A stretch of 63,441 nt of DNA, counting the filler, from Octopus bimaculoides (taxonomy: Eukaryota): NCBI RefSeq assembly GCF_001194135.2. It is 7 parts of 6 records of this genome, joined end to end, with 100 filler letters (N's around TTAATTAATTAA, not from the genome) between each part and the next. Parts side by side here need not be neighbours in the genome. Positions count along the whole stretch, not along the records: positions 13,471 to 23,417 come from NC_069004.1; 6 more parts are not named here. One strand, given 5' to 3'. Below the pieces are notes generated by a model that saw only the letters and a list, made by a program, of their open reading frames with translations, made no database searches and was not told the origin of the DNA. The position numbers and the translations under genes were made by a program. Within the stretch, counting starts at the first letter, position 1. The number at the start of each line of letters is the position of its first letter. Shown one piece after another: positions 13,471-44,222 of this stretch.

Positions 13471-13559
13471 TATATAATTTCCCCTATATGTTCAACATTT
13501 TCTCTTTCGTCTTTACACTTAGCAACATGGACTATGAATAAATAAATATATTAAAGTAA

Positions 13560-13720
13560 TATCATAACGGGGTTTGTTGTGCAAGACCGGAACAATGCGA
13601 GAAGATATACAGTAAACTACAAAAAAAAGCAACGACCTTTTCTAACCCGGACTTTCCAAAATGTGCTGAAGGGTCTATAGCCTCGAAATATAGAAATATG
13701 AGGTAATACTACATCTTTGT
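13560..13720 (+). mobile_element. Decayed Penelope-like 3' end with degenerate hammerhead-like core
   Basis: ctgaagggtctatagcctcgaaat at 13666-13689 has the CUGANGA/hairpin/GAAA layout with substitutions. Confidence 0.35.
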
Positions 13721-14049
13721 TTTTTGTTTTTCTTTCTGTAGTTTAGTTTATATCTTCTCGTATTGTTCCAGAAGTGGCTCCGTGGTAAGACATTTGCATC
13801 CCAAGCACATCGTTTGGGGTTCAGTCCTATCGCTTGGTACTTTGGTGAAGTGACTTCTTCTATAGCCTTGGGCCGACCAAAGCCATTTGGTAGACGAAAA
13901 TTGAAAGAATCGTATTTTTATGTATGTGTGTATGTGTATGTGTGTGTGTGTGTGTCTATGTGAGAGAGAGTGCCTGTGTTTGTGTCCCCTCCCCCATCAT
14001 CGCTTGACAACCAATGTTGTACACACACACACGCACATATATATATATA

Positions 14050-14320
14050 TTGAGGCACTCCATAAATAACGCGTTTTTTAATACCTTTTTTTATTTTTCA
14101 AAATTCAGACAAAGTTCTTTTTTAATCTAAAATATACTCTCCTTCATTTTCTGCAATGTTCTTTCATCTATCTGGTAAATTTGCAAGGCCCCTCTTCCAA
14201 AATTCCCTTGGTTGAGATGAAAGATACTCCTCTAGTACTATTCTGCCCTCATCCACTCTCCTCCGACTTTTAGTTCATGCAATTAAAAAAAAAAACCGCA
14301 TTATTTATGGGATGACCTAA
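14050..14320 (-). mobile_element. Internally deleted mariner element
   Basis: TIRs gaggcactccataaataacgcgtttt / aaaaccgcattatttatgggatgacct; internal FSSQPREFWKRGLANLPDR*KNIAENEGEYILD* is a mariner transposase C-terminus. Confidence 0.8.
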
Positions 14321-14329
14321 TCTATATAT

Positions 14330-14712
14330 TCTTTTACTCTTTTACTGGTTTCAGTCATTTGACTACGCCCATGCTGAAGCACCGGTTTAAATGGTGTTAG
14401 TCAAAGAAACTGACTCCAGGACTTACTCTTTGCAAGCCTAGTACTTATTCTATCGGTGTCTTTTGACGATACGGGGACATAAACACACCAGCATCGGTTG
14501 TCAAGCGATTGTAGGAGGAGAAACACAAACACAGACACACACACATTCGTGTATATATATATACGACAGGCTTCTTCCGGTTTCCGTCTGCCAAATCCAT
14601 CTTTGGTCGGCCCAAGGCTATAGTAGAAGACACTTGACCAAGTTGCCACGCAGTGGGACTGATCATGTGGTTGGGAAGCAAGTTTCGTACCACAGAGCCA
14701 CGCCAGCGCCTT
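14330..14712 (-). mobile_element. SINE family A
   Basis: Reverse-complement match to the family A head, core and tail. Confidence 0.85.
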
Positions 14713-14889
14713 CATTTATATATGAAATGTTACTGCAGACGTCACAGTGTATGCATCCATTGATTAAATAAAATAATATTCATAAAAAGACAAATACAAT
14801 CCTAAATATCATAAACAAAATAGATAAACACATGAATAAAAGCAAATTGGAGACGAGAATCACAGAAGTTATAGCAAATCACGACTAAC

Positions 14890-15107
14890 CAAAAAATATG
14901 ACCACCACGTTGATCCGGAGAGCGTTATGGGCCGTATAGAAGGATGATGTGCTAAATCTTCTAGACTTGTGATGGATAATTTGGAGACTTTGACTGTAAG
15001 AATAGCAGCTAAGAAGGCTGTGTAGTATGTGGTCAACAGGATAACAAACAGCCACCAGAAGATGATCATGATTCGACCTGATATGTTCTTTGGTTCGTTG
15101 TTTTGAC
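14890..15107 (-). CDS. iGluR/IR-like gene, exon E (M3 and start of S2)
   Basis: acttgcag|GT CAA...TTG|gttagt; 218 nt, phase 1/0; PKNISGRIMIIFWWLFVILLTTYYTAFLAAILTV...ITSLEDLA; the five exons total 951 nt with no stop. Confidence 0.95.
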
Positions 15108-15136
15108 CTGCAAGTAGATTGTATATCTGTATATAT

Positions 15137-15193
15137 GTGAATCATATATGTGAATCATATATGTGAATCATATATGTGAATCATATATGTGAA
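15137..15193. repeat. 13-bp minisatellite, ~4.5 copies, in the 226-nt iGluR intron between the M2 and M3 exons
   Basis: gtgaatcatatat repeats starting at 15137, 15150, 15163, 15176, 15189. Confidence 0.95.
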
Positions 15194-15333
15194 TGCATAT
15201 ATATGTATATAAATTAAACATACATATAGAGATACCCACATGAAGCACATAACCACTATCACCACTAAATCACCACTCACGAACGCAGGTATAAAAATCG
15301 TTCAATCAAATCAGATTACTTCGATGTTTTTAC

Positions 15334-15652
15334 CTTGCATGAGGGCTGTTCCAAACGTGTACCAGCAATTCTCGTAGTAGGAACAGTTTAATTCTTCACT
15401 AGCTTCAGTAGATCTGAACATGGCGCTGATCTTGTTGATTACTGTCAGGAAGATACCGACAAAAAATATGGCAGCAGGCGTTAGTATCCAAACCCACAAT
15501 TGAAATGGTCGAAATATCATGTCCATGGAGACACGGTCATCTTCCAGTCTGTAGGCGATGCCAATTCCGTCTTCAGAGAAAGGATGTGTGAAGTCAATAT
15601 ATTCAAAACGATGGGCTGTCAGTGTAATAGGTCCGATTCCGAGATCGACTTC
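15334..15652 (-). CDS. iGluR/IR-like gene, exon D (end of S1, M1, M2 pore loop)
   Basis: tctccag|GAA...CAA G|gtaaaa; 319 nt, phase 0/1; EVDLGIGPITLTAHRFEYIDFTHPF (cf. APLTITLVREEVIDFSKPF), FRPFQLWVW plus hydrophobic M1, then WYTFGTALMQG. Confidence 0.95.
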
Positions 15653-15748
15653 CTGGAGAGGAAGGAGGAGAAAAAAATTAATATAGTGCACAGCATGTAA
15701 TTGTTGTCGGTGCTGTTGTTGTTATTATCATCATCATCATCATCATCA

Positions 15749-15827
<79 letters not shown>

Positions 15828-16061
15828 CATTATTATTATTTAAGGTGGCGAATCGTTAGCACACCAGGCAAAATGCTTTGTAGCATTTCGTCTGTCTTTA
15901 CGTTCTGAGTTCAAATTCCGCCGAGGTCGACTTTGCTTTTCATCATTTCGGAGTCAATAAATTAAGTACAAGTGAAACACTAGGGTCGATGTAATCGACT
16001 AGCCCCTTCCCTCAAAATTTCAGGCCTTGTGCCTTTAGTAGAAAAAAATATTATTATTGAT

Positions 16062-16555
16062 AATTTCCAGATGTCCTTGACCTGGCAGTGCTACCAGGGG
16101 CGATACCGGTTCGAAATAAACACTACAGGCACGGATGTGCTGTCATACGGGCTTGTCTGAGGTGCACACAGAGTGAGTGACGAAACCGTTCTGTACGCTC
16201 TCGTTCAGTGTCTGGGCTGACTTGTGGGGTTATGTCGAACAGCTGTTGTCAGGTGTGGGATGGATCCGTCTGCGCAGCCGAGTCGGTAGTGACGATCGCT
16301 CTGCCGCCCTCCTTCAATCGGGCAAGCCAAAGCACTTTTCCTTTGCTTGGTGGATGTGGCGAAAGAGGTTGCGTGGTGGCCATGGTTGAAAGGCATGAGG
16401 ATAGATACATTCCTCTTTGGTAGAGCTCTCATTAACTTCTTTAAGTTTCCCTTGAGAAGGAGATTGAGCGTTGAGAGGGAAGTGTTTTCCTCGAATGAGT
16501 TTATTGGAAGGTGGATAAAAGTTGGGAAGTCTGGACATTAACTACGGGATGACCT
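16062..16555 (+). mobile_element. Tx1/L1-clade LINE, 5'-truncated ORF2 C-terminus (zf-RVT), frameshifted
   Basis: SLTWQCYQGAIPVRNKHYRHGCAVIRACLRC...DETVLYALVQC..LWGYVEQLL...AKEVAWW...LINFFKF..RRRLSVERE; GC-rich island antisense to the iGluR. Confidence 0.8.
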
Positions 16556-17086
16556 GATAAATGTAAAATATTTCTAAAATAAACTCAGGTCAGCACTTCT
16601 AGTTTGAGGGGATTATTTTCATTTATATTGGTTTCATTACGAGGCGTGTATTTTATTGTTGACCCTCCCTTTATCTATTCGAGAGGGATGAAAAGCAAAC
16701 TTGACCCGGACACGAGATGGTGATGTGATCTCAGAATGCAAACTGACTTAGCTAATTACTGTAAGATATTGTTGTAAGATGTATGCGGCATACATATAAC
16801 AACAGAGCGTCTATGTAGTCGTTAATTCTGCTAAAAATGCCAACCAGATCCCTTTTAAATCATACCCTTCTATCCTGAATTAAAAGGTAGAGATATTAAA
16901 CTATGTTGTATTTGATACACCAAGTAAATATACTTAACAATGTTGTCTTTGATACACAAAAAAAATAAAAATTGGAAGGTATATTGGAAGGTATATATAA
17001 TCACCACTGATTATAGACCAGCTTGATCAGTGCTGTTCTTGGTTTGAAAAGCAACAACAATGAAGATAACATTCTAAGGAACTTAC

Positions 17087-17180
17087 ATTGCGGTATGCCA
17101 TTCCTATAACTCCAGTCCAGTTATGCGTTGCATTATCATAAACACCGAACATCTTGTCTTCAGGTTCTTGCAGTACATAA
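17087..17180 (-). CDS. iGluR/IR-like gene, exon C (S1: FG...WTGVIG)
   Basis: ttctttcag|T TAT...AAT|gtaagt; 94 nt, phase 2/0; YVLQEPEDKMFGVYDNATHNWTGVIGMAYRN aligns with GluA2 'DGKYGARDADTKIWNGMVG'; phases match both neighbours. Confidence 0.93.
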
Positions 17181-17954
17181 CTGAAAGAACATGAACAAGG
17201 GAGATAAATAAGTGATCAATATATCTGTAAAATTGTAAAGGCGAAGAAACAGATCTATTTGTTTTTTATTGATAATTCTTGTATAAAATTATAATAGTTT
17301 TTTAATTATAACATTTTTGTTAATTAATAATTCTCAGGTTGAGTGAACGGTTATAAACTTCGACCACAAAGTTGGGTGTGTTCCGCAAAATGAAAATATT
17401 TTTCACCACAGAAGTTCTACACTGATCATGTTTTGCTTGTCTAGAGTAAAACTGTAGCAGAGCTACATATTACAAAGTAATATGTGAATCGACCTGCATA
17501 GTAGACGAATATATCGATGAGGCGTTTAGCCTTGCTTTGATACAGTAGCCTCGTTCTGATACACTGGCCTCGTTCTGAGCTACACTGTAAAAAATCACAG
17601 TTCCTGCCAGGTTTCGGCCAGAGGTACATGTCTTCTCTGCAGATCCACGCGCAATATCCCACTGCGACTCACATGTCTATTCACCTCGACACAAGATATA
17701 TGGTTCGTAAACAAAGATCTCACACACACATTCTCAAAATGACTGTTCTCAGAATAAACAATATATTTATACACAAAAATGTCTTATGGTGATTCATACT
17801 GAGCGTTTTTTCCATTTAATAACACGCACTTGAACAGCCAGGAGAATTATTCAACCACATGAACAGACCCTATCTCCAACCAATAGCTAAAGACAGGTTA
17901 AGTCAAAATTGATGGCATGAAACTGCGTAAGCTAAGTTCCCGATTCAGAATGAT

Positions 17955-18160
17955 CCTTTTACTTGTTTCAGTCATTTGACTGCGGCCATGCTAGAGCACC
18001 GCCTCGAGGGGTTTTCCTTGACCAAATCGACCCAGGGCTTATGTTTTAAACCTAGTGGTTATTCTATCGGTCTTATTTGATGAGCCACTAAGTTACGGAG
18101 ACATAAACACATCAACACCGGTTGTCAAGCGGTGATGGAGGAACAAACACAAACACAAAG

Positions 18161-18214
<54 letters not shown>

Positions 18215-18408
18215 ACGCACGCACATATACACACACATATATATATTCGGCTGGCTTCTTTCAGTTTCCGTCACCAAATCCACTCACAAGGCTTTGGCCA
18301 ACCCGATGCTATAGTAGAAGACATTTGCCTAAGGTGCCACACAGTGGGACTGAACCCGAAACCATGTGGTTGGGAAACATGCTTCTTACCACAAAGCCAC
18401 GCCTGCGC
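17955..18408 (-). mobile_element. SINE family A, near full length
   Basis: Head ggcgcaggcgtggctttgtggtaag (minus strand), internal (CA)n, full tail. Confidence 0.88.
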
Positions 18409-19571
18409 CAAATGTCTAAGTTTTTTCTATCAAAGCATTTATTTATATAATTCACTCGACGCATTTCATTTTCTTTTACTCTGATTTGGTATCTTATTTA
18501 ATGAGCTATGTAACCCATTGGGTGAGTGTTTAGAATCAATTAAAGTATTCAATTAATGTATGTAAAGGCTTTTCTCTGCTCCCTATCATCATTTCTACTA
18601 TGCATATTTTGATAATATTTTCTCGCAGAGACTCCATGTGTTTGGAGAAGAGACACCATAGGTTTGAAAAAAAAAATGACCTCAGTACGATTTGAAACCA
18701 AAATCCAAAGAGACGTAACCAAATAGCAATTGTCATATTATCCACTACTCTGCTGATTCTACCAACACACTTTTCTTTTTTCTCAGAATATCATAGCAAT
18801 AATTTCTAATATAAGCACAAGGTCACAAATTTAGTGGGAGGAGGAGTTTAACTGATTACATCTGTCTCATGTTTCACTGGTCCTCTATTTCAGAAACCAC
18901 GAGAGGATGAAAAGTAAAGGTGACTCTGATGGGATTTAAACTTAAAACATAATAGCAAGAATACTGGAAAACATTTTATACAATGCTCTAATGATTACAT
19001 AAATCTACCATCATTTCTGGCGATAATAATCATACCTACGTGAGGTTCATGGCCATTTACTACAAGTGGGTAAGGAAGGGGTAAAGTTGATAATATCAAG
19101 CATAGTACCAGACTGAACCAGTGTTTTATTGGAATTGCAGTCCTTGTATTTAGAACTAAACTTTCTGTTTATGTGCTTTCTAATGTGTTTTCTTTATGAA
19201 GACAGTAGCATATAATTTGTAGTTAATATGGTTGCTGTGTGCATATATGTACGAGAGTGGTACTTTTGCTTCGATTGTTCGGTTATTCCTCATTTTTAAT
19301 ACCTTGTTTTCGCTCTACAAGTTACTCTGAAAAAGGACAATATCCGAAACGTCTTGATTACTTTCCATTTGTCTAAGCCACAAACAATCTCGGTCGTTAA
19401 CTTATCTCGTTTTGTTGCAGATGGCTATTGTTTTGTTTTGTTTTTTTTCGCCATTAATATACATACATACATACAGACAGCCAGACAGCCAGACAGCCAG
19501 ACAGCCAGACAAACAAACAAGCATACACATAAACACATACATAGATTGTATAAGTGAAGTAACCGACTTAC

Positions 19572-19663
19572 TTGAAGTTCATGGTACTACTCATTTCATT
19601 GAGTATATCGATACAAAATCCTTCCCATCCGGTACCGTTTACTCTAGTAATGTATGGAGCCAG
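19572..19663 (-). CDS. iGluR/IR-like gene, exon B (S1: PY...EGFCIDIL)
   Basis: gtttcag|CTG...AA|gtaagt; 92 nt, phase 0/2; LAPYITRVNGTGWEGFCIDILNEMSSTMNF matches the conserved 'EG(F/Y)CIDLL' S1 motif; absent from the ORF track. Confidence 0.93.
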
Positions 19664-19693
19664 CTGAAACATAAGCATATATATATATATATC

Positions 19694-20342
19694 CAGGGGT
19701 TGGACAAAATAATGGAAACACCTAGCATCATAATTTGAAATATCTATAAAACCGTCAAAAGCTTGTTATTATTTTTGTTTTTTGATTTATTATTAGTGCT
19801 GCTCAATATGTTTTGCTTAAAATTGATGTTTCTTTTCAGATATCATCAGAAAAAAGGTAGTTAAAATTCATTAAAATGACAGATCTGCCGGACTTTCGAA
19901 GAGGTCAAATTGTTGGTGCTCTTATGGAAGGCGCGAGCGTAACGAAAACAGCCGAAATGTTTGGTGTATCAAGAAGTACTGTTTTGAAAGTAATTACAGA
20001 CTTTGAGAAAGAGGAGGAAACCTCTTCTTCGAAACAAAACTCCGGAAGAAAAGCAAAACATTCAGATAGAGACCGTCGGACTCATACGCGAATTGTTAGA
20101 AAGGATCACAAAAGTACAGCTCCCAAAATTACTGCAGAGCTTAAATACCACCTCAAGGACCCAGTTTCCACAAAAACTGTTCGCTGCGAGCTGCATGAAA
20201 CCGGATTTCACGGGAGAGCTGCATTGAGAAAACCACTATTTTCAAAAACAAACGTCGCAGAGTGTTTAGAGTAGAGTAAAAACCTACAGAATTGGTCTCT
20301 AGAGCAGTGGACGAATGTTATTTTCTCGGACGAGTCATCCTT
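19694..20342 (+). mobile_element. Tc1-family transposon, 5' half with left TIR
   Basis: TIR caggggttggacaaaataatggaaacacct; MTDLPDFRRGQIVGA...GVSRSTV...GRK...VSTKTVRCEL..GF.GRAA.RKPL, stop at 20272-20274, then W..VIFSDESSF; ends at a SINE. Confidence 0.93.
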
Positions 20343-21103
20343 TATCGATCCTTGAGGAATAAAACACAAGATTGATCCCGGAAGAATTTAAACTCAGAAC
20401 ATGAAGACAGACGAAATGTCGTTAAGAATTTCGCTAACGATTCTGCCAGCTCTCCGCCTTCATGAAATGAAATTTTGATTTCAAATTCTGGCACAAAGTC
20501 AACAGTTTCATAGGGAGGTGGGCAGCCAATTAGATCGACTTCAGAGTTCAACTGGTTCTTATTTTATCGATCCCCGAATATATGAAAGGCAAAGCTGACC
20601 TCGGCGAAGTATGGACGCAGAATGTAAAGACTGACGAAATGCCGCCATGAAACGAAATAGTAAAAACGTAAATATATATAACTCGTAAGATGCAGGCATT
20701 GCGGTGTGGTTAGGAAGCTAGCTTTGCAATTACGTACTTTCGGTGGCTTGGGCGTCCCGTTCAAGTGGGGAATAAATAAGCCACGGAAATTGGAGAAACA
20801 GCCCCTTATGAGTCGGTATGAGAAGGGAAACTTTATTTTATTTACTTATACACACATACTCAAACGTGTGTGTGTGCATCTTTACACACAGTTTGACAAT
20901 CATTATGTCGCCATAACTTAGCAGTCGACATCAGAGTCAAATAGAATGGGTTTGATGCGTTTAAACAAACATCTGTACTGTGGTCGATTTCTTCGCCTGT
21001 CAAGACGGTGCCCCAGCACAGCAGCAGACAAATGACTGAAACAAAGAAACGGTAGATGGCAAAAGAAAAAGAAAAACTACAATGACGATTCAGGAGTACT
21101 TAC

Positions 21104-21331
21104 TACGATGGTTCCAACCTTTAGGGTTACGTTACCCAATCCAGGTAAAGCGTTGGGAAAGACATCCCTCGCGTCTATAGGCGTCACTGTGAAAACTAGA
21201 CCAATGTCAAAACACCACTCTCCTATTCGCTTGTAAGTGGCCTCTTCTTCGTATCCATCTACACGGAATATATCGTATTTTCTATCGATAACCTCTTCTG
21301 GATCAACCATAAACATGTTGTCGTTGCTTTC
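21104..21331 (-). CDS. Divergent ionotropic glutamate receptor / IR-like gene, exon A (end of ATD, start of S1)
   Basis: tctgtttag|GAA...GTA|gtaagt; 228 nt, phase 0/0; ESNDNMF...RKYDIFRV...YKRIGEW...GL...VFPNALPGLGNVTLKVGTIV fits the ATD C-terminal 'IGxW' segment and the first S1 strand of iGluRs. Confidence 0.88.
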
Positions 21332-22594
21332 CTAAACAGAGAAAGAAGTAAGAATCGGTACAGCGACGGTGTGGTATTAGGGTGGTAATTAATCTATTCT
21401 ATTCAATTTATATGTGTATTGTGGAAGCTAAGCGTTCGTAATGTTTAACAGAACAAAAGTCAGTGCACAAAGTGTGTAACTTGAACGAATACAAGGTTGT
21501 AACAACTTGAACAAACCTATCAAGTATATTGTTTTTAATAATTACTCATTTCTTAACTTTTGACTACTTATGGGGCCTAAATACTCATAGATATAGTCGT
21601 ACATACAGTGACTTATGATACTTTTTGGCTCTGGTAGGGTTGTCTTTTTTTTTATAAATAGATTCATTTTCTCTTTTTCGAAGGCATAGGTATGAACGTA
21701 ATTGAGTTTTTTTTTGATTAAATGTAAACTTTAATTTCATAAAAATGCAACAACTTCAGGTTTGATTTCATTACATATTTTGAGTACTTGTTATCTCTCA
21801 CACTCACAGTTTGACGAATTCTTTGAATTGAATAATTTGGTTAAAAGAAATTATGAAATTGTTCTGAAACACGTTACTTGTCGATATATATATATATATA
21901 TANNNNNNNNNNNNNNNNNNNNNNNNNNNNNNNNNNNNNNNNNNNNNNNNNNNNNNNNNNNNNNNNNNNNNNNNNNNNNNNNNNNNNNNNNNNNNNNNNN
22001 NNNNNNNNNNNNNNNNNNNNNNNNNNNNNNNNNNNNNNNNNNNNNNNNNNNNNNNNNNNNNNNNNNNNNNNNNNNNNNNNNNNNNNNNNNNNNNNNNNNN
22101 NNNNNNNNNNNNNNNNNNNNNNNNNNNNNNNNNNNNNNNNNNNNNNNNNNNNNNNNNNNNNNNNNNNNNNNNNNNNNNNNNNNNNNNNNNNNNNNNNNNN
22201 NNNNNNNNNNNNNNNNNNNNNNNNNNNNNNNNNNNNNNNNNNNNNNNNNNNNNNNNNNNNNNNNNNNNNNNNNNNNNNNNNNNNNNNNNNNNNNNNNNNN
22301 NNNNNNNNNNNNNNNNNNNNNNNNNNNNNNNNNNNNNNNNNNNNNNNNNNNNNNNNNNNNNNNNNNNNNNNNNNNNNNNNNNNNNNNNNNNNNNNNNNNN
22401 NNNNNNNNNNNNNNNNNNNNNNNNNNNNNNNNNNNNNNNNNNNNNNNNNNNNNNNNNNNNNNNNNNNNNNNNNNNNNNNNNNNNNNNNNNNNNNNNNNNN
22501 NNNNNNNNNNNNNNNNNNNNNNNNNNNNNNNNNNNNNNNNNNNNNNNNNNNNNNNNNNNNNNNNNNNNNNNNNNNNNNNNNNNNNNNNNNNNNN

Positions 22595-22678
<84 letters not shown>

Positions 22679-23386
22679 ACAGTTGTAATAAGAAACTCTC
22701 AATAGAGCTGAATAGCAGATGGTCTTTAGATGAGAAGAAACCCCACTCCGGCTGCACATGGCTCAGTGGTTAGAGCGTCGAGCTCACAGTTATAAGGTAG
22801 TGAGTTCGATTTCCGAACTGGGCTGAGCGTTGTGTTCTTCAGCAAAACATTTTATTTCATGTTGTCCCAGTTCACTCAGCTGCAGAAATTAGTTGCGACG
22901 TCACTGGTGCCCAGCTGTATCGGCCCCTTTATACCAGGGGAGGCTGGTATAAATGGGCAACTGCTTGTTGTCCATAAACGACCTTTCCCAGACTTGTGTG
23001 CCTTCGAGGGAAACTTCCTAAGTGCAATCGCATGGTCATTCATGACCGAAGCGCGTCATTGCACTTGTATAAAATTAATGTGGACCGCAATGGAAGCACA
23101 CTGTTGGCGATTCCCATTAGGATAAACCTGTGCAGTTCAATCTTCCACCTTCGGTCATGGTGCAGTTATCTACCCTGTCAGTATGTATAAATGTGCTTTT
23201 ACGCAGCTATAAGCGGTTTAAGTTTCATTTCTAGAAATATATGTGCTTATATCATACTCAGTCGCAATTAGTGAGTGCATTTGTTCATGTATATGTGTGT
23301 CTGTCTGTGCGAGCGTGCGTGTGTATGTGTATATGTGTGTATGTGTGTGTATGTATGTTTGTATATAGAAATCCATCTACATTCAA

Positions 23387-23417
<31 letters not shown>

Positions 23418-36759: not shown

Positions 36760-39593
36760 CTAGCAATAATACCCGTCGTTGATTGGGTAATTACTTTTAC
36801 TCTTTTATCAGGAGCCACATTCAAAGTATTATATANNNNNNNNNNNNNNNNNNNNNNNNNNNNNNNNNNNNNNNNNNNNNNNNNNNNNNNNNNNNNNNNN
36901 NNNNNNNNNNNNNNNNNNNNNNNNNNNNNNNNNNNNNATATATAATTTACCCCTCCTGCATGTGGTATTTTATAAGAGAAAAACGTCTAACAATTGAAGT
37001 AGAAAGAAGATCAGTTTCATACACGATCTTTTGTTTGTTTATTATATGACAATAATAAGTGAGTTGTTTGTGTTATTTTATTTATCAATACACTAATGGC
37101 ATTTACATAATACATTCATTTAAATAGGTAATTTACTCATTCTTGAATGTAATGATAGTAATGGCAAATTAAGTTATTGAAGTATTCATGTTGCATTAAG
37201 AGTGAACATTTCTGTATAAACAATGTTTTTTGTTTTATTTTGGGGTGCATTAGCAAAAAGATTTGCTTTTGCTCTCACGCGTGACACCTCTACATAAAGT
37301 TGGCCATTTGAAGAGCATGGTTCTTCAAATTGCAATCCAGGAATCTTTAGTGTCTGGTCTTAACTTTTATTAATGTTCATGGCAAAAGAAACTTGGATGG
37401 GAGACTGTAACCGTTTAAATTGGAATGAGACATTAGATGGCATAACATGTATGCGAGGAATGAATACGGTCTTACCTTTACTGCAACCAATGACAATATT
37501 TGCCCCAATGCAATTTCCCACGAGTTTGTGCACAATTAATTTTGTACCATTGCATAATTTTGGTTGAGACAAATTATGTAATAGCATAGTAAGAGACCAT
37601 TTTTTCATCTGTACCTGGTGGTTCTAGTGAGTTCAAAAATTCGATGGGCTAGTTAACACTATCTTGATCATCAATAATATGGTCAATCGAGTGAATAATT
37701 CTCCCGGAAGTTTATTCAATAGCATATTATTAATGCTATTTACAGCAACATTTTTCGGAGCCAGGATTGCCTGGTCACAGACCCAGTCTGTATTTTTGTA
37801 ATTATGAAGAAGATACGGAAAGATTTCAGCCACCAAATCATCGATGGAATCAGCAGAATTACATATTGGATTGAGAGTAAGAAACTGTTCTTCATCAATT
37901 GTAACTCCTCTTCATCGAATTTCAAAAACTGCGCTGCAAATAGTTCAACTGATTGATCTCTTGAAAGTCACGATCTCATATTTGTCGAAAGTTGAAGTGT
38001 TTTTACATGGTGCCATAATACAGAAAACTTTATTGAAGCATTGAGCTCATCCACTTTTGTTCCTCTCGGAACAATAATACTGTGAAATTTCCCATCATGA
38101 AATTAAAATTTCTAATGTCTCGCAATGTTCTATCCACAGCTTCAATAGATTTTTTGTGGGCCATGGTACATTCGTCCCAGACAATTAAGTGACATCTTTG
38201 TATTAGTTCACCCATTGCAGAATTTTTAGATATATTACAAACTGGATCTTGTTAGATAAATCTAAAGGTAACTTGAATGTTGAATGGGCAGTCCGACCAC
38301 CGGGTAGTAATGTTGCTGCAATTCCAGAAGTGGCAGTAGCTAAAACTATTTTATTTTCTTGACGAACTTTAGCCAGAAGTTTAATTACAAATGTTTTCCC
38401 AGTAGACAGTAGAATATGCACAACGTTGATCAAGTAGAAGCTTGGGAAGATTATCATTTATGTACATGGTCAGTTCCTCTATATCAGGAAATTTCCTTTA
38501 TTATTTCAGTGAACAGACTGTTAAGATCCCCTCTATTAGTTAGTGGGAGACCTAAATTTTCTATAGGTTCACTTTCCATCGAAATAATTTGATTTTCTAT
38601 TTCAATCAAAGCCGTATTGTATATAACACCAGTGAAACTATCTTGCTCGAGATTACTCAACTGAACTTGGTGCTTGAAATCTTCAGCAAGTTCAATTCTG
38701 AACTTATTCCACAGTTCAAGAGGATTACTTACCTCACAACTTTTGAGAATAATAGCAAAAAGACTTCTTAAACTCGTTGGTGTTTTTGATATTGAAGCTT
38801 CTTCCAGGATTGCATCCCATTGCTGATCACTTGCAAGCAAACCTAACTTTAAACACGTTTCTCGATATGTTCTGCAAATCTCACCATAATCTTACAAACT
38901 TACCCATGAAGTTTGTCCTCTTTTTACATGAAGAAGCATTCTGAGATGAAAGCATTGATTTTCGTTAGGATGTTCAGTATATACTCTACCAATTGTTGTA
39001 CCAATATTAATCCCAGAATGACCTTGAACCTTTGTACCTATTTTGCATCTATTCCATTTATTATTACTCCATGTATAATAAGAAAGAACCACATGATATA
39101 GTAGCGCTTTTGAAATATTGTCGCCACGACAAAGATTGAAAAAGACTGTTAAAATGGTATCCTTTGGATTTGAAACTTGATTTGCAGCTGCCTCAGCAGT
39201 GAAGTAAACCCTTGGGCCATTTTCTAGATGCATAGAAAGTTGTTGAATGGATAGCTGCCTTTCGTGGATTGGGAATCCGGAATATGTCAGAAGACCTCAT
39301 ATCATTACAACTTCTATATCTCCTTAAATGGTATTATTTAACTTGATAGGTCGTATGCTTAAGGAGAATTGAAATATTCAGTTTCAAATCTGAACCAGGG
39401 TGAGACTACTCCTACAGGTTTGCAGTCTTTACGTTCATTTTGACAGACAGTTTCGAATCTGAACCAGGGTGTAACTACTCCTAAAGATTCACTGTCTTCA
39501 CTTTCATTCTGATAGGCAAACAAACCAACAAACAGACAGAAATTCAATTCGCTTTGAGGGATAAACAAAGAGAAATTCAATTTTATATATAGA
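36760..39593 (-). mobile_element. Internally deleted Helitron (late Rep plus PIF1 helicase pseudogene) with both termini
   Basis: HLENGPRVYF, QQWDAILEEA, GKTF...ATSGIAATLLPGGRTAHSTFKLP, IVWDECTM, AILAPKN, LCNGTKL, FIPRI, F.RLQ.P...FAM.INKS; 5' TCTATATATAAAA at ~39593; 3' hairpin TACCC..GGGTA then CTAG|T at 36760 (across a ~100-N gap). Confidence 0.9.
39379..39516. repeat. 69-bp tandem duplication in the Helitron 5' subterminal region
   Basis: cagtttc(a/g)aatctgaaccagggtg..actactccta at 39379 and 39448. Confidence 0.85.
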
Positions 39594-39595
39594 CA

Positions 39596-40115
39596 TGCGA
39601 GGAGGTACCCAAAAGAAGCCGGGATTTTGTTGTAATATTTTATTCACTTAGTTTTACATGTTTACACCATTATCACCTTCAAAGTATTCCCCATTTGAAG
39701 CAATTCTTTAGCCCAGAAGCATTTTCCACTGTTAGAAGCAGCCTTAGAACTCTTGCAAAGTGATATCTTTTAACGCCTCTGTTTTTTTCTTTGTTTTTTT
39801 TCTTCACCTCCTCCACATCTGCGAAACGTTTCCCTTTAAGGTCTTGTTCATTCGAGGAAACAAAAGAAAGCTGCAGGGAGCAAGATCGGGTGAATAAGGA
39901 GGGTGGGTAAGAGGGGTCATGCCATTGTTGGTCAAAAACTGTCTCACACTCAAGTAGGTGTGCGCAGGTGCATTGTCGTAATGTAACCACCACCCTCCAT
40001 TTTGTTACTAGTTGAGGCGTTTTCGACTCGCCGCGTCTCGCAAACGCTTCAGAACCGCCAAGTAAAATGTCTGGTTAACAGTTTGACCATGAGGAACAAA
40101 TTCTGTGCGAACAAT
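39596..40115 (-). mobile_element. Mariner-family transposon 3' fragment with TIR
   Basis: Frameshifted HYDNAPAH...P.SPDLAPC.F...DLKGKRFADVEEVKK...KCIASNGEYFEGD; TIR gcgaggaggtacccaaaag at 39596. Confidence 0.85.
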
Positions 40116-40124
40116 TCCTTTCCT

Positions 40125-40260
40125 CGTGTTCCTTTCTGCTGAAGAGCGTAGGCTCGAAACGTAAAAGACTTTCTCACCTTCCCGTGCGTTAAACTAATAC
40201 GCTTGTTTGTTGTTTATACAACTGTCTTCGCCTTTTGTTTTTCTGTAAATTCCAACAATA
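40125..40260 (+). mobile_element. Penelope-associated pseudo-LTR with minimal hammerhead-like core
   Basis: CTGAAGA-gcgtaggctc-GAAAC at 40139-40160. Confidence 0.6.
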
Positions 40261-40548
40261 CACACACACACACACATATGTATACTGACTTCAAATTTTG
40301 GCACTAGGCCAGCAATTTTAGGGGCGAGGTAAGTCAAGCCCGAAAGCATGAAATGCTAAGTCGGCTGGGTGAGAATTTGAACTCAGAACGTAGACAGACG
40401 AAATACCGCTAAGCATTTTTTACCAGCTCACATTATACTATTTACACANNNNNNNNNNNNNNNNNNNNNNNNNNNNNNNNNNNNNNNNNNNNTTAATTAA
40501 TTAANNNNNNNNNNNNNNNNNNNNNNNNNNNNNNNNNNNNNNNNNNNN

Positions 40549-40589
<41 letters not shown>

Positions 40590-40592
<3 letters not shown>

Positions 40593-40945
40593 TATGTATA
40601 TATTTGTGTCCCATTGTGTGGAATCTTGGGCATGTGTCCTCTACTTTAGTCTAGGACTGACCAAAACCTTGTGAATGGATTTAGTAGATAAAAACTGAAA
40701 GAACCCTGTTGTATATATATGTATATCTGAATATGTGTGTTTGGTTCTGTGTCTATCCTTCACCAATGCTTGACAACTGTTGTTGGTGTATTTACATTAC
40801 TGTGACCTAGTGGTTCAGCAAAAGAAACTAACACCATAAATACCCACTTAAAATGAAATATAAATAACAGGGTTGATTTGTTAAACTAAAATTCTTGAAG
40901 ACAGTACACCTGCATGGCCACAGTCCAATGAGTAAAGCAATAAGA
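40590..40945 (+). mobile_element. SINE family A copy with heavy CpG decay
   Basis: accg>actg, acgt>acat, ccgt>ctgt, agcg>agtg, tcgg>tcag relative to the copies at 27211 and 6753. Confidence 0.75.
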
Positions 40946-41029
40946 TATATGTAAATGCACGCACACACATATGCATATATCTATCTATCTCTCACTGTAT
41001 TTATGTAATAAATATGTATACACACATAT

Positions 41030-41065
<36 letters not shown>

Positions 41066-41067
<2 letters not shown>

Positions 41068-41209
41068 CAGGAGTAGCTCGCTTACCAACCACATGGTTTT
41101 GGGTTCAGTCCTACTGTATGGCACCTTGGGCAAGTGTCTTCTACTATTGCCTAGGTTCGACCAAAGCCTTGTGAGTGGATTTGGTAGACAGAAACTGAAA
41201 GAAGCCTGT

Positions 41210-41293
<84 letters not shown>

Positions 41294-41500
41294 TGTGTGT
41301 GTGTGTGTGTGTCTGTGCTTGTCCCCACAACATTGCTTGACAACCGATGCTGGTGTATTTACGTCCCCATCACTTTGCGATTTGGCAAAAGAGACCAATA
41401 GAATAAGTACTAGGCTTACAAAGAATAAGTCGATTTGCTCAAGTAATGGCAGTGCTCCTGCATGGCCGCAGTCAAACGACTGAAACAAATAAAAAATAAA
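41066..41500 (+). mobile_element. SINE family A with long internal (TA)n
   Basis: Head, core and tail match family A; another decayed copy at ~43070-43345. Confidence 0.85.
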
Positions 41501-43091
41501 AGAAAAAGAAAATGCACATATATAAACACACAAACATACACATCTACATCCAAACACAAGCACATACACACACGCACACTCACACACACACATATTCTCT
41601 TCGGTTCTACTGAACCCACAATGCAGCTTTTCTTCAAAAATCTATAATGTCATCATGTTGTCTAAAATTACTAATTCCTCTCCATTCACCTCATAATATC
41701 TCTTCAGAATAAATGAATAAATAAAAAAAACCTATAGGCATCCTTCATCTGTCACAGGATCAGCAGAAGTTTGAATGAAAAATCACTATACCAAAATTCT
41801 CTATTGCTGCAATTTTGCCATGAAAAGGAGATCAAAGTCAGCCCATTTGAAAATAACTCTTTACATTCCAGTTGCAGTATAGAGAATGTTAACTGTTTGC
41901 AATTTCAGAGATTCCATTCACAGTAGACAACACTTGAGTTATTATAAAACGTATTTGATTTGTTTTTTTTAGTTCTTTATTTAGAACTGTTCTTTTTCTA
42001 ATTTTACAATTTCTTATATTTTATGTGGTATTAGTTTGAATTTGCAAATGCAATTTTGCTTCCTAATCTATGAAATATAACAAGGGGAATTCTGAATTCT
42101 TTACTGTTTCGAACATCACTTCTTGTGTTTTATATTGTTAAAATTCATTTTGAAATATCTATTTTTTCAGAAGTGTGATAGAATGGCAAGTAAATAGTTT
42201 GTGTGTTTGTATGTGCATGCATGTCTGTATGTTTGTGTATGTGTGTGACAGAATATACATGCATACATTTTAGAAAGGTGGGGGAGAGAGAAGGTGACAT
42301 TTGACAGAAAAGATTGTTTCAACAATAAAATTCATCTGCTTACTACTCTGATGGATGACAGCACTACAACCTTTGTGCCATGTCTATAGAATCAGGCTAT
42401 ATGTTGTATTGTAGGAGGAGATCACCCATTGACTTTTCACTTGTAATAAATTATTTTTGTATACCTATTGCTGGTTCTTTGAATCAAAGGTATCACTCAA
42501 TATCATCAAAATAAAGCAAAATAATTTCCATAATTTTTTTTATCCTTTCACACACCAAAAGATTATTTGAAAACAATTTCATATTTTTATCTTGTTTTTT
42601 CATTTTTTTCACCTTTTAGCATATATTCATTGAAATATTTTCATATCTGCTGATTTATTGAAGACAAAACAGAACGTTTGTAGTTTCACATAGATTGGCA
42701 TTTAATGATTATTTTGATACATTGCAAAGAGATGTAATTGAAAATACTCTACTTCTATTTTTCTGAATGTACCAATGTACTTGTACAACATGAATGCTTA
42801 TAAAACTTCATTTATTTACTTGTATGTTACTGGTGAAGATTGCCCATCCAAAACTAGTTAATACAGATTGAGTACAGCTCAGGAATTTGACCATATCTGA
42901 TATACTAATTTCCTAGTTGACCAGCTTGTAAGGGTGTCAATTATTTCTCATCTTCTGGATTTTGAACTTTCAGCTGCACATTATGACATTCTTGGATCCA
43001 TGCTCAGGGTCAAATATGTCCCCAATAATTTCTTCTGTACCTTAATGTGTTTGATATCATCAACAAAGAGCACAAACTGAAAGAAGCTCAT

Positions 43092-43133
<42 letters not shown>

Positions 43134-44222
43134 TTTGTGTCTGCATTTGTCTCCCCCATCATCACTTACAACTGGTGTGTTTACATCCCCGTAACTTAGC
43201 AATTTGTGAAAATAGACCAATAGAATAAGACCAGGTTTATTAAAAAAATAAGTACTAGGGGTTGACACATTAGACTAAAAATTCTTCCAGGTGGTGCTCC
43301 ACCATGACCATCGTCTAATGACTGAAACAAATATAAGATAAAAGNNNNNNNNNNNNNNNNNNNNNNNNNNNNNNNNNNNNNNNNNNNNNNNNNNNNNNNN
43401 NNNNNNNNNNNNNNNNNNNNNNNNNNNNNNNNNNNNNNNNNNNNNNNNNNNNNNNNNNNNNNNNNNNNNNNNNNNNNNNNNNNNNNNNNNNNNNNNNNNN
43501 NNNNNNNNNNNNNNNNNNNNNNNNNNATATATAGTGACAAACTGAAGAAAAGAAATCCTTCAAATGGGGGTGTTAAACATCCAATTTACTGGTACTTCAG
43601 TTGGATACCATATAAATATTGATATAATTCAATAATAAAGATAAATTAAATATAGAGATATTCTATTGACATTCAATAATTTATTTATGTTACAATATTA
43701 CATTAAATACTATGAATATAATGTATAACATAAAACATAACATAATATTATATAAATAATTACAGAAACCGTAAAAGGCCAACAAATTGTTCTGGCTTAT
43801 ATATATGTTTTCTTATATACATAATCACAGTTCAATTATATATAAGTCACTGCAGGGTATATCGGTTCAAGAAGATGAAATCCCACCTGGAAAAAGTATG
43901 GCTAGATTGTAAAAAATGAATTCAAATGTCTGTGTTATGGGCGTGAACGTTAATTATTCAACCTTGCATCAATTACTATTAAAACACAACAAAAACGTTT
44001 TAATGGATGATACAATCAAGTTCAATCCACAACCATTAAAATTCACTTTATTATATCTCAAACACCAATTGAAACCCTTTTATGTCCACGTCAGTCTCTT
44101 GTCATCAAAACATACAATAATAATATGAGTGTATATAAATTTATATGATTGTTATATATTATATTTATAGTAATATAAATAAATTATTGAATGTCAGTAG
44201 AATATCTCTATATTTAATCTAT

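Follow-up and report, generated by a model that had tools for sequence, protein, structure and literature searches.

Positions 14890–21331 (minus strand) very probably hold five consecutive internal coding exons of a single Octopus bimaculoides gene, XP_014773475, whose product is an ionotropic glutamate receptor (iGluR) superfamily subunit. They lie on one piece (13471–23417) of the window, that is, the whole 63,441-nucleotide stretch of DNA analysed. The first-pass annotation had assigned the exons to an iGluR of a cephalopod, and both parts of this claim held: the Pfam matches are strong (see below), and the piece matches O. bimaculoides chromosome CM046624.1 at 100% identity.

Exon structure and reading frame

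The features of the piece, in the direction of transcription, are as follows.

21332–23417, minus strand: part of the upstream intron, containing an assembly gap (N run 21903–22594)
21104–21331, minus strand: coding exon, 228 nt, phase 0/0, splice sites read from the sequence; last ATD strands, ATD–LBD linker and first S1 strand (...GNVTLKVGTIV)
19664–21103, minus strand: intron, 1440 nt, holding a transposase remnant
19876–20274, plus (opposite) strand: Tc1/mariner-type transposase helix-turn-helix remnant (Pfam HTH_Tnp_Tc3_2, E=1e-10; HTH_23, E=1e-7)
19572–19663, minus strand: coding exon, 92 nt, phase 0/2; S1 (LAPYITRVNGTGWEGFCIDILNEMSSTMNF)
17181–19571, minus strand: intron, 2391 nt, holding a SINE-like interspersed repeat
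about 17956–18409: SINE-like repeat enclosing a (CA)n tract; direct-repeat families D2–D5, 80–89% identical to the copy at 14339–14710
17087–17180, minus strand: coding exon, 94 nt, phase 2/0; S1 (NYVLQEPEDKMFGVYDNATHNWTGVIGMAYRN)
15653–17086, minus strand: intron, 1434 nt, with a microsatellite and a G+C-richer stretch
about 15971–16470: G+C-richer stretch
15698–15849: (ATT/ATC)n microsatellite
15334–15652, minus strand: coding exon, 319 nt, phase 0/1; end of S1 with the alpha-carboxylate-binding Arg, pre-M1, M1, and the M2 pore loop to the Q/R-site equivalent
15108–15333, minus strand: short intron, 226 nt, phase 1
14890–15107, minus strand: coding exon, 218 nt, phase 1/0; remainder of the pore loop, M3 carrying the gate motif, beginning of S2
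13471–14889, minus strand: start of the following intron, to the piece edge, with SINE-like copies inside
14339–14710 and, inverted, 13821–14019: SINE-like copies
19550–19800 of L001, outside the piece: following exon, 251 nt, with the remainder of S2

All five exons proposed earlier, with GT-AG borders and matching phases, were recovered at these coordinates, with AG directly before every exon and GT directly after it (donors gtaagt three times, gtaaaa and gttagt). Together they sum to 951 nt, or 317 codons without a stop, which bears out the uninterrupted frame first described, and all four junctions coincide with those of RefSeq. A five-exon open frame of this kind is far beyond chance. The absence of the exons at 19572–19663 and 17087–17180 from the ORF track was also as reported: since only 36-aa and 41-aa ORFs overlap them, and only in part, an ORF list that starts at 60 aa would not contain these two short exons. 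The domain order likewise stood, running from the end of the ATD through S1, M1, M2 and M3 to the start of S2.

Existing annotation and completeness of the gene

The reconstruction is not new: RefSeq already contains the identical exons, and XP_014773475 appears among the iGluR/IR reference sequences tabulated in a published molluscan set (PMC12837371). A search with the spliced 317-aa peptide found XP_014773475.2 at 100% identity over 312 residues (query 6–317), beginning at the start Met of that model, which lies at 21316 inside the exon 21104–21331. Query residues 1–5 (ESNDN) agree with XP_014773475.1, the older version of 699 aa, whose acceptor is likewise at 21331 and which is also 100% identical to the exon 19572–19663 (tblastn). 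The two versions, named 'glutamate receptor 2-like' (v1, 699 aa) and 'glutamate receptor U1' (v2, 396 aa), represent the same gene. Version 2 takes an internal Met as its start, reads into an intron at its 3' end and is devoid of ATD and M4; the ATD forms a separate 303-aa model in the current RefSeq, also ending by read-through. The gene is thus real, and probably functional, but it is already annotated.

A complete orthologue of 843 aa is present in O. vulgaris ('glutamate receptor ionotropic, kainate 3-like'). Identity is 94.0% across the 317 aa and 94.6% for the whole protein, and most substitutions are conservative; all four junctions read straight through in the orthologue, and the frame is intact between the two species across at least 11 exons. 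If 'lineage-specific', as the receptor was first called, is taken to mean species-specific, this orthologue contradicts it. Though divergent, the gene is well conserved from one octopus species to another.

The O. vulgaris protein additionally has a 45-aa segment before the first of the five exons and a last exon of 99 aa that encodes M4 and the tail, and its Lig_chan match extends through M4. The last exon (S2 end, M4, tail) is missing from both XP_014773475 versions, and the O. bimaculoides DNA sequenced so far, 10 kb downstream included, did not yield it. Nothing in the sequenced DNA of O. bimaculoides matched the 45-aa segment either, so that the corresponding upstream 135-nt exon was not found; the gap at 21903–22594 may conceal it. 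The case that the gene would be complete in O. bimaculoides is thus drawn from the orthologue and from the assembly gaps.

A divergently transcribed paralogue with the same exon plan

The nearest relative is the paralogue XP_014773476, divergently transcribed about 55–65 kb away (O. sinensis XP_036368967; 'delta-1-like'). It follows the same 13-exon plan, and in the shared part the introns agree in position and phase. Intron positions and phases derived independently for XP_036368967 are identical to those of the window (corresponding exons 228/101/94/325/218 nt), and its phase-1 intron falls at the same alignment column as the intron 15108–15333. Homology to the paralogue is detectable over the full length including the ATD (30% identity, E=9e-107), yet its LBD–TMD is just 39% identical to that of the octopus gene. 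Its gate, SYTAHLVAF, is also non-canonical, with Lys at its Q/R site and Ser-Asp-Lys at its 653–655. Between octopus species the paralogue pair shows 91.5% identity, i.e. it is no better conserved than the gene described here. We also observed that the paralogue carries a 114-nt exon at the place matching the upstream gap 21903–22594.

Family membership and phylogenetic placement

The domain searches on the 317-aa peptide returned Lig_chan-Glu_bd (E=1.9e-28) and Lig_chan (E=7.5e-24, residues 192–298). GluD1 was its top PDB match in one search (E=7e-35); the phmmer bit scores were 132.5 for GluK5, 132.1 for GluD1, 131.1 for GluK2 and 127.9 for GluA2. Because these best scores are nearly tied, the peptide is roughly equidistant from the kainate, delta and AMPA classes. 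By phmmer, residues 28–60 align with GluK5 from its residue 385 on, at the end of the ATD, and both GluD1 and GluK5 align to the product of the exon 14890–15107 without gaps.

Trees were built by neighbour-joining (NJ) on corrected p-distances, with some truncated sequences, GluN1 as outgroup, and Phi, Epsilon, IR25a and IR8a anchors left out. The gene grouped with its O. vulgaris orthologue in 100% of bootstrap replicates, with the Octopus paralogue in 80–82% and with Argonauta in 61%. About 30 lophotrochozoan sequences cluster with it, and not with AMPA or kainate receptors; this group received 55–71%, and its union with an IR-C/IR-D-like clade 81–94%. In 0 of 500 replicates did the gene fall inside the AMPA, kainate, delta or IR-A clades, so the position outside AMPA and kainate receptors proposed at first was confirmed. 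Deep nodes were weak (delta adjacency 32–47%), and NMDA receptors, with GluN1 as outgroup, were more distant than AMPA/kainate. By these comparisons the gene is a member of an AKDF-type, lophotrochozoan-only group outside AMPA, kainate and vertebrate-anchored delta receptors, and sister to molluscan IR-C/IR-D-like receptors. A profile of the lophotrochozoan group aligned end to end with full-length GluK3 (its top PDB match), GluD2 and GluA2, ATD included.

Ligand-site, pore and gate residues

A poor fit to the AMPA/kainate/NMDA signature motifs had been suggested. For the core this did not hold: the octopus protein agrees with the consensus at 34 of 36 columns of at least 85% conservation (2 deviations, against a median of 1.5), and the equivalents of Arg485, Thr480 and Asp705 are kept. 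The alpha-carboxylate-binding Arg (codon 15610–15608) is Arg in 145 of 147 aligned sequences. For the pore and gate the suggestion was right. The Q/R-site equivalent (codon 15340–15338) is Met, found in only 2 of 147 sequences at that column, and position +4 from it is Asn. The gate motif YYTAFLAAI (15027–15001) has Phe for the near-invariant Asn of SYTANLAAF, the selectivity positions 653–655 (14913–14905) are Ser-Thr-Trp, and in the conserved LBD disulfide the first Cys has become Lys. The O. vulgaris orthologue shares this Met, gate motif, Ser-Thr-Trp and Lys. AMPA (GluA2) and kainate (GluK2/3/5) receptors have the same fold and domain order, about 30% identity, and Arg485 and Thr480 in common with the octopus protein, but they have Glu for its Asp705, Gly/Thr for its Ser/Trp at 653/655, Gln/Arg for its Met at the Q/R site, and Asn for its gate Phe.

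Alternative readings

The protein might be a delta-like 'orphan' subunit, which would bind glycine, D-serine or GABA and act as a synaptic organiser or modulator with little or no current of its own. Ser653, the non-polar residue 655 and Asp705 fit the GluD/GluN1 pattern (rule in PMC6307864) and, like the ATD–LBD–TMD layout and comparable PDB scores (GluD1 and GluD2 being among the top matches), are shared with the vertebrate delta receptors GluD1/GluD2 and with protostome delta-like receptors such as oyster CraGluD (PMC10861852). Several group members carry the NCBI name 'delta-1-like', the weak NJ adjacency points the same way, and the oyster receptor gave no currents in oocytes (PMC10861852); the gate Phe and the lost disulfide Cys also speak for this reading. 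Residues alone, however, do not reveal function. Delta receptors retain SYTANLAAF and Gln at the Q/R position, neither of which the octopus gene has, and no replicate (0/500) joined it to the vertebrate GluD1-anchored clade, which is well supported without it (86–87%). We therefore regard this reading as unlikely.

The first-pass annotation suggested a variant receptor, possibly sensory. A variant IR in the Drosophila sense would be a chemo-, thermo- or hygrosensory subunit of peripheral sensory cells, here in suckers, olfactory organ and skin, sensing environmental ligands with an IR25-type co-receptor. The IR-C/IR-D-like sister clade, the non-canonical pore and gate motifs and the tandem duplication typical of chemoreceptor families speak for it, as do reports of molluscan IRs in chemosensory organs and of IR25 in cuttlefish suckers (PMC11682238, PMC12837371). 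Gastropod IR-C/IR-D receptors (PMC12837371) also share an FPN...GLG...TL motif before S1. On the other side, identity to gastropod IR-A, IR-C, IR-D and IR25b is only 25–33%, these classes have other proteins as best matches, the M3 of IR-C is far more degenerate (e.g. AYTGKLTSY), and the octopus gene's group forms a clade of its own. The gene is not a classical variant IR in the usual definition, because it keeps a full-length amino-terminal domain, alignable to that of the paralogue and, in the group profile, collinear with GluD2 and GluK3 from the N-terminus, together with the Arg, Thr and Asp that hold the amino acid backbone. We consider this reading quite improbable.

A decaying copy, i.e. 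a pseudogene or truncated remnant, would account for the 396-aa RefSeq model without ATD and M4 and for the M4 exon not found within 10 kb downstream. It is very hard to reconcile with the complete orthologue carrying M4, with 94–95% identity, conservative changes and an unbroken frame over at least 11 exons, and with the intact core positions; both model truncations are intron read-throughs adjoining assembly gaps. Scarcely tenable is a conventional AMPA or kainate subunit made to look divergent by fast evolution, as the NCBI names ('kainate 3-like', 'glutamate receptor 2-like') and the GluK3 match of the group profile would have it, given the nearly tied PDB scores, 0/500 bootstraps inside or adjoining either clade, the roughly 30 lophotrochozoan sequences that join the octopus gene instead, and residues 653 and 655 differing from Gly and Thr.

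Predicted properties of the octopus subunit

The protein would be one subunit of a tetrameric cation channel gated by amino acids. The kept Arg would hold the alpha-carboxylate of the ligand and the kept Asp its alpha-amino group. By positional rules set on other receptor classes, which underlie both the ligand and the pore predictions, the Ser653/Trp655 pattern would be typical of glycine/D-serine-type sites (delta, GluN1) and not of glutamate sites. From the Q/R-site Met, the +4 Asn and the Phe that replaces the Asn of SYTANLAAF, permeation and gating are predicted to be non-standard; as the gate motif is unique and Lys takes the place of the disulfide Cys, gating might differ from that of a standard iGluR.

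Exon structure and integrity of the gene

We inspected the minus strand from 21500 to 14700 and spliced by script the five intervals proposed in the first-pass annotation for the gene now carried as XP_014773475.

Exons of XP_014773475 in the window
Exon 1: 21331-21104, minus strand, 228 nt, phases 0/0
Exon 2: 19663-19572, minus strand, 92 nt, phases 0/2
Exon 3: 17180-17087, minus strand, 94 nt, phases 2/0
Exon 4: 15652-15334, minus strand, 319 nt, phases 0/1
Exon 5: 15107-14890, minus strand, 218 nt, phases 1/0

All five exons are preceded by a pyrimidine-rich tract ending in AG and followed by GT (gtaagt in three cases, gtaaaa and gttagt in the others), and the translated splice of 951 nt yields 317 residues with zero stops. 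The proposed GT-AG structure, its phases and its 317-aa frame are thus borne out at the base level. It is also true that the two short exons were missing from the ORF track: exons 2 and 3 are overlapped only in part, by ORFs of 36 and 41 aa, and the list cut-off was 60 aa. The reconstruction itself is not new, as these exons are already annotated. The spliced peptide (P0001) is 100% identical to XP_014773475.2, 'glutamate receptor U1 [Octopus bimaculoides]', and the piece at 13471-23417 is 100% identical to chromosome CM046624.1 (GCA_001194135.2). The older 699-aa model, XP_014773475.1, reads ...GFNIS|ESNDNMFMVD..., with the acceptor at 21331 that the first-pass annotation had chosen.

The four junctions are supported by two independent checks. 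In the O. sinensis paralogue XP_036368967, whose exon map was derived from its own locus, the introns fall in the same alignment columns with phases 0, 2, 0, 1 and 0 (exon lengths of 228/101/94/325/218 nt vs 228/92/94/319/218 nt in XP_014773475), and the 843-aa O. vulgaris orthologue (P0159) is continuous across all four. The O. vulgaris and O. bimaculoides proteins share 94.0% identity across the 317 residues, or 94.6% when every aligned residue is counted, with mostly conservative substitutions (I/V, S/T, D/E, R/K, M/I); a gene conserved in this way across Octopus species is not lineage-specific in the sense of being confined to one species. Since the paralogue pair of O. bimaculoides and O. 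sinensis shows 91.5% identity against 94% for the orthologue pair, XP_014773475 appears to be constrained at least equally. At the 36 columns that are at least 85% conserved among 62 iGluRs/IRs, it deviates twice (median 1.5; paralogue 5), so that the core fits the family well and the poor fit to signature motifs proposed before is not seen there. Judged from these comparisons, it is unlikely that XP_014773475 is a pseudogene, given its domain and structure matches, the shared intron plan, the complete and conserved orthologue and the intact core columns.

Superfamily membership and domain plan

Pfam assigned the S1 lobe (Lig_chan-Glu_bd) to residues 69-173 (E=1.9e-28; 99.3 bits vs a cut-off of 30) and the channel domain (Lig_chan; M1, re-entrant M2 and M3 between S1 and S2) to residues 192-298 (E=7.5e-24, far above the curated cut-off). 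The 317-aa peptide matched solved iGluR structures with E about 1e-35, and its alignment to GluD1, GluK5 and GluA2 is collinear across S1-M1-M2-M3-S2. The best PDB scores are nearly tied (GluK5 132.5, GluD1 132.1, GluK2 131.1, GluA2 127.9 and GluD2 125.2 bits). No NMDA subunit occurs among the best 60 PDB matches, and the corrected distance is largest to GluN1 (1.82, compared with 1.61-1.77 for the AKD anchors), which served as the outgroup in our trees.

The window holds only the last ~65 residues of the ATD, which can be aligned to GluK5 from residue 385; the claim that an ATD end is retained is therefore correct, and the whole domain is present in XP_014773475.1 and in the O. vulgaris orthologue. 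Pfam ANF_receptor gave no match to this ATD. In a PDB profile search, a profile built from ten members of the wider group described below aligned with GluD2 from residue 16 and with GluK3 from residue 44, and it spanned full-length GluK3, GluK2, GluD2, GluD1 and GluA2 end to end (454 to 413 bits), which shows a complete ATD-LBD-TMD plan.

Relatives and a divergently transcribed paralogue

A HMMER search of 1.84 billion representatives, in which relatives above 50% identity are collapsed into the cluster of the query, returned no non-self protein above 39% identity. About 25 representatives scored 180-258 bits, below which generic iGluRs level off at 130-160 bits. Three lophotrochozoan phyla are represented among the high scorers that have names: molluscs (Octopus, Argonauta, Haliotis, Patella, Lottia, Babylonia, Pomacea, Batillaria, Elysia, Plakobranchus, Candidula, Nucella, Pecten and Mytilus), the annelid Owenia and the nemertean Tubulanus. 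An initial statement from the 317-aa search, that other Octopus species have no orthologue, was dropped when a search with the 699-aa model recovered the one in O. vulgaris. The 90% cluster of P0001 also holds an unrelated-looking 49-aa JGI 'hypothetical protein' (P0004), probably a clustering artefact.

The top relative is XP_036368967 of O. sinensis. Its orthologue in O. bimaculoides, XP_014773476, shares a chromosome with XP_014773475. The two O. bimaculoides genes are divergently transcribed, XP_014773476 starting ~55-65 kb from the 5' part of XP_014773475, and the two paralogues can be aligned over their full length, including the ATD (30% identity, E=9e-107). At the O. sinensis paralogue locus (L002), an iGluR-family gene of 769 aa at 39163-43617 stands tail-to-tail with XP_036368967, and a third consecutive O. 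bimaculoides accession exists (XP_014773475/476/477). The arrangement suggests that the iGluR-family genes beside the paralogue form a small local cluster.

Phylogenetic placement

We computed neighbour-joining (NJ) trees from Kimura-corrected distances for 62 and 72 taxa (339 columns, 500 bootstraps). The rat GluA2, GluK2 and GluN1 cores were checked against PDB chains and agreed at every residue for GluK2 and GluN1 and at all but the edited Q/R position for GluA2; GluD1 and GluK5 segments were taken from PDB alignments, and gastropod IR-A, IR-C, IR-D and IR25b from the supplement of PMC12837371. These distance trees, in which some sequences are truncated and anchors for Phi, Epsilon and IR25a/IR8a are lacking, recovered the anchor clades for AMPA (57%), kainate (97%), delta (86-87%), IR-A (96-99%) and IR-C-like receptors (96-98%).

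Successive groupings around XP_014773475 and their NJ bootstrap support
XP_014773475 with the O. vulgaris orthologue: 100%
Joined by the Octopus paralogue: 80-82%
Joined by an Argonauta protein: 33-61%
Lophotrochozoan group of ~30 members: 55-71%
Lophotrochozoan group with the molluscan IR-C/IR-D-like clade: 81-94%
Joined by the GluD1-anchored delta clade: 32-47%

In 0/500 bootstraps did XP_014773475 fall within or beside the GluA2-anchored AMPA clade, and the same count was obtained for the kainate clade and for the GluD1-anchored delta clade, to which the larger group is weakly adjacent (32-47%). Its position outside AMPA and kainate is solid. Nesting in these two classes, one outcome that would have overturned the first-pass annotation, did not occur. 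Its view of the gene as a divergent member of the iGluR family in a cephalopod, lying outside the classical classes, is upheld.

The octopus protein was never placed within or beside IR-A and never nested in IR-C in the NJ trees. We rejected the idea that the lophotrochozoan group is simply gastropod IR25b, IR-A, IR-C or IR-D: identity to these classes is 25-33%, and they find other proteins as their best matches. A tree of S1-M1 only, with IR-D and IR25b fragments, gave no resolution, and an amphioxus protein (P0160) grouped weakly with IR-A, outside the lophotrochozoan group (NJ). A sister relation between the lophotrochozoan group and IR-C/D is reasonably supported. Groups that could be counterparts of the lophotrochozoan group have been described before: iGluR groups specific to molluscs and a 'GluD' clustering with IRs (PMC12837371), the Phi class and a Zeta class found in molluscs only (PMC8437780), and protostome delta receptors that branch early and whose function is unknown (PMC10861852).

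Ligand-binding and pore residues

Residue positions follow GluA2 numbering and were assigned from gapless alignments to GluD1 and GluK5 and from a 147-sequence alignment.

Ligand-binding, pore and gate residues of XP_014773475
Arg485, which binds the ligand alpha-carboxylate: Arg kept, codon 15610-15608 (Arg in 145/147)
Thr480 and Pro478: both kept
Position 705 (acidic): Asp, in the next exon, outside the piece
Positions 653-655: Ser-Thr-Trp, codons 14913-14905
Q/R site: Met, codon 15340-15338 (found in 2/147 aligned sequences)
Q/R site +4: Asn, where Asp or Glu is usual
SYTANLAAF gate: YYTAFLAAI, 15027-15001 (the Phe is unique in 147 sequences; Asn in 115)
Cys718, first Cys of the LBD disulfide: Lys in O. 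bimaculoides and O. vulgaris, L001 19550-19800 (Cys in 94% of 62)

L001 denotes coordinates of the O. bimaculoides locus. Two assignments made by eye were corrected by the alignments: 'SGST' had been read as Gly653-Ser654-Thr655, which is wrong by one, and the Gln of 'LMQG' had been taken for the Q/R site, where the alignments place the preceding Met, this Gln being the next, near-invariant position. The paralogue carries Lys at the Q/R site. All of the pocket, pore, gate and disulfide residues in the table are identical in O. vulgaris, which indicates that the unusual ones are fixed features and not errors.

Variant IRs are usually recognised by loss of the Arg, Thr or acidic residue and, except for the co-receptors IR25a/IR8a, by the lack of an ATD. 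XP_014773475 keeps all three residues and has an ATD. The earlier label 'IR-like' consequently holds in part: the sister relation to molluscan IR-C/D gives it some support, but the usual definition of a variant IR does not apply to a protein whose ATD is full and whose backbone-binding triad is intact. Its pocket instead shows the glycine/D-serine-type residues of the delta class (Ser653, a non-polar residue at 655 and Asp705), a pattern that XP_014773475 has in common with delta receptors and GluN1. According to a positional rule, this combination goes with a small ligand of the glycine/D-serine type and not with glutamate (PMC6307864).

Annotation state and missing exons

RefSeq has carried the gene for years, but the current annotation models it poorly. 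The accession appears in the molluscan iGluR/IR reference list of PMC12837371, and our literature search found it named in no paper's main text. Current RefSeq breaks the one gene into two truncated models, a 303-aa ATD 'gene' and the 396-aa XP_014773475.2. The former consists of residues 1-298 of the old model followed by VSRQT*, a read-through past the donor TCA|gtaagt (L001 5578-5595). The latter starts at an internal Met (window 21316) and ends in ...SFK* by read-through into the donor AA|gtaggt (L001 19799-19804). When this donor is used, the result is a 251-nt exon of phase 2 (L001 19550-19800), an exact match in length and phase to the penultimate exon of the paralogue.

After that donor, the O. 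vulgaris orthologue continues as N-IIKFQELGLIEKW..., comprising the end of S2, M4 and the tail (a last exon of 99 aa), and directly upstream of window exon 1 it has a further segment of 45 aa (a 135-nt exon). M4, which falls outside the window, is present in this orthologue, where the match spans positions 4-144 of 146 of the Lig_chan profile, and is also encoded by the last exon of the paralogue. In the 10 kb O. bimaculoides flanks, outside N gaps, neither the M4 exon (queried with C-terminal sequences from the orthologue and eight relatives) nor the 45-aa segment gave a match. N runs lie at the expected exon sites (window 21903-22594; L001 6031-7899 and 20988-22220), and the paralogue carries exons at both sites that are absent from the XP_014773475 sequence. 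The 135-nt exon and the last exon of O. bimaculoides are probably hidden in these assembly gaps, or else are absent.

Repeats and other features of the piece

The piece at 13471-23417 is A+T-rich (about 35-40% G+C) and rich in microsatellites, with 21903-22594 as its one internal N run. Neither ARAGORN nor Rfam detected tRNA genes or RNA families in it, including in its SINE-like copies.

Repeats and other features in and around the introns
19876-20274, plus strand: Tc1/mariner-type transposase HTH remnant in intron 1, antisense to the gene; 132-aa ORF (HTH_Tnp_Tc3_2 1e-10, HTH_23 1e-7)
14339-14710 and 17956-18409: SINE-like element, copies 80-89% identical, each containing a (CA)n/(TG)n tract
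13821-14019: inverted copy of the SINE-like element
21000-21052: fragment of the SINE-like element
15698-15849: (ATT/ATC)n microsatellite, ~45 nt upstream of the exon 4 acceptor (15653)
15971-16470: G+C-richer stretch in intron 3 (0.49 vs about 0.35), with overlapping 70-75-aa ORFs on both strands

The Tc1/mariner ORF in intron 1 is likely a transposon remnant, and the G+C-richer stretch may be another repeat or transposon fragment.

Discussion

As a discovery, the gene is of little weight, since it has long been in RefSeq and is listed in a molluscan iGluR/IR set. Comparison with the orthologue from O. vulgaris and with the exon plan of the paralogue adds how the two truncated models should be joined, and it shows that the O. 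bimaculoides assembly lacks a 135-nt exon and the M4 exon.

The product of XP_014773475 would be a subunit of a tetrameric, amino-acid-binding channel. Its ligand is predicted to be small, of the glycine/D-serine type rather than glutamate (positional rule of PMC6307864), and from the substitutions in its pore and gate one would expect either unusual permeation and gating or a mainly non-conducting, delta-like role. One could go further and picture the octopod-specific paralogue pair as a receptor with a non-canonical pore and a delta-type pocket that works away from classical synapses, perhaps sensing amino acids in the suckers, the skin or the olfactory organ; we consider this very improbable, and a sensory role of XP_014773475, which the first-pass annotation had also raised, is pure conjecture. 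If true, it would add an iGluR-derived sensory channel, of an origin independent of arthropod IRs, alongside the nicotinic-type chemotactile receptors.

In conclusion, XP_014773475 belongs to a functionally uncharacterised lophotrochozoan group between delta receptors and molluscan IR-C/D, and it has highly unusual residues in its pore and gate that are nevertheless kept between Octopus species. The octopus paralogue pair is a reasonable candidate for learning what protostome delta-like receptors do.
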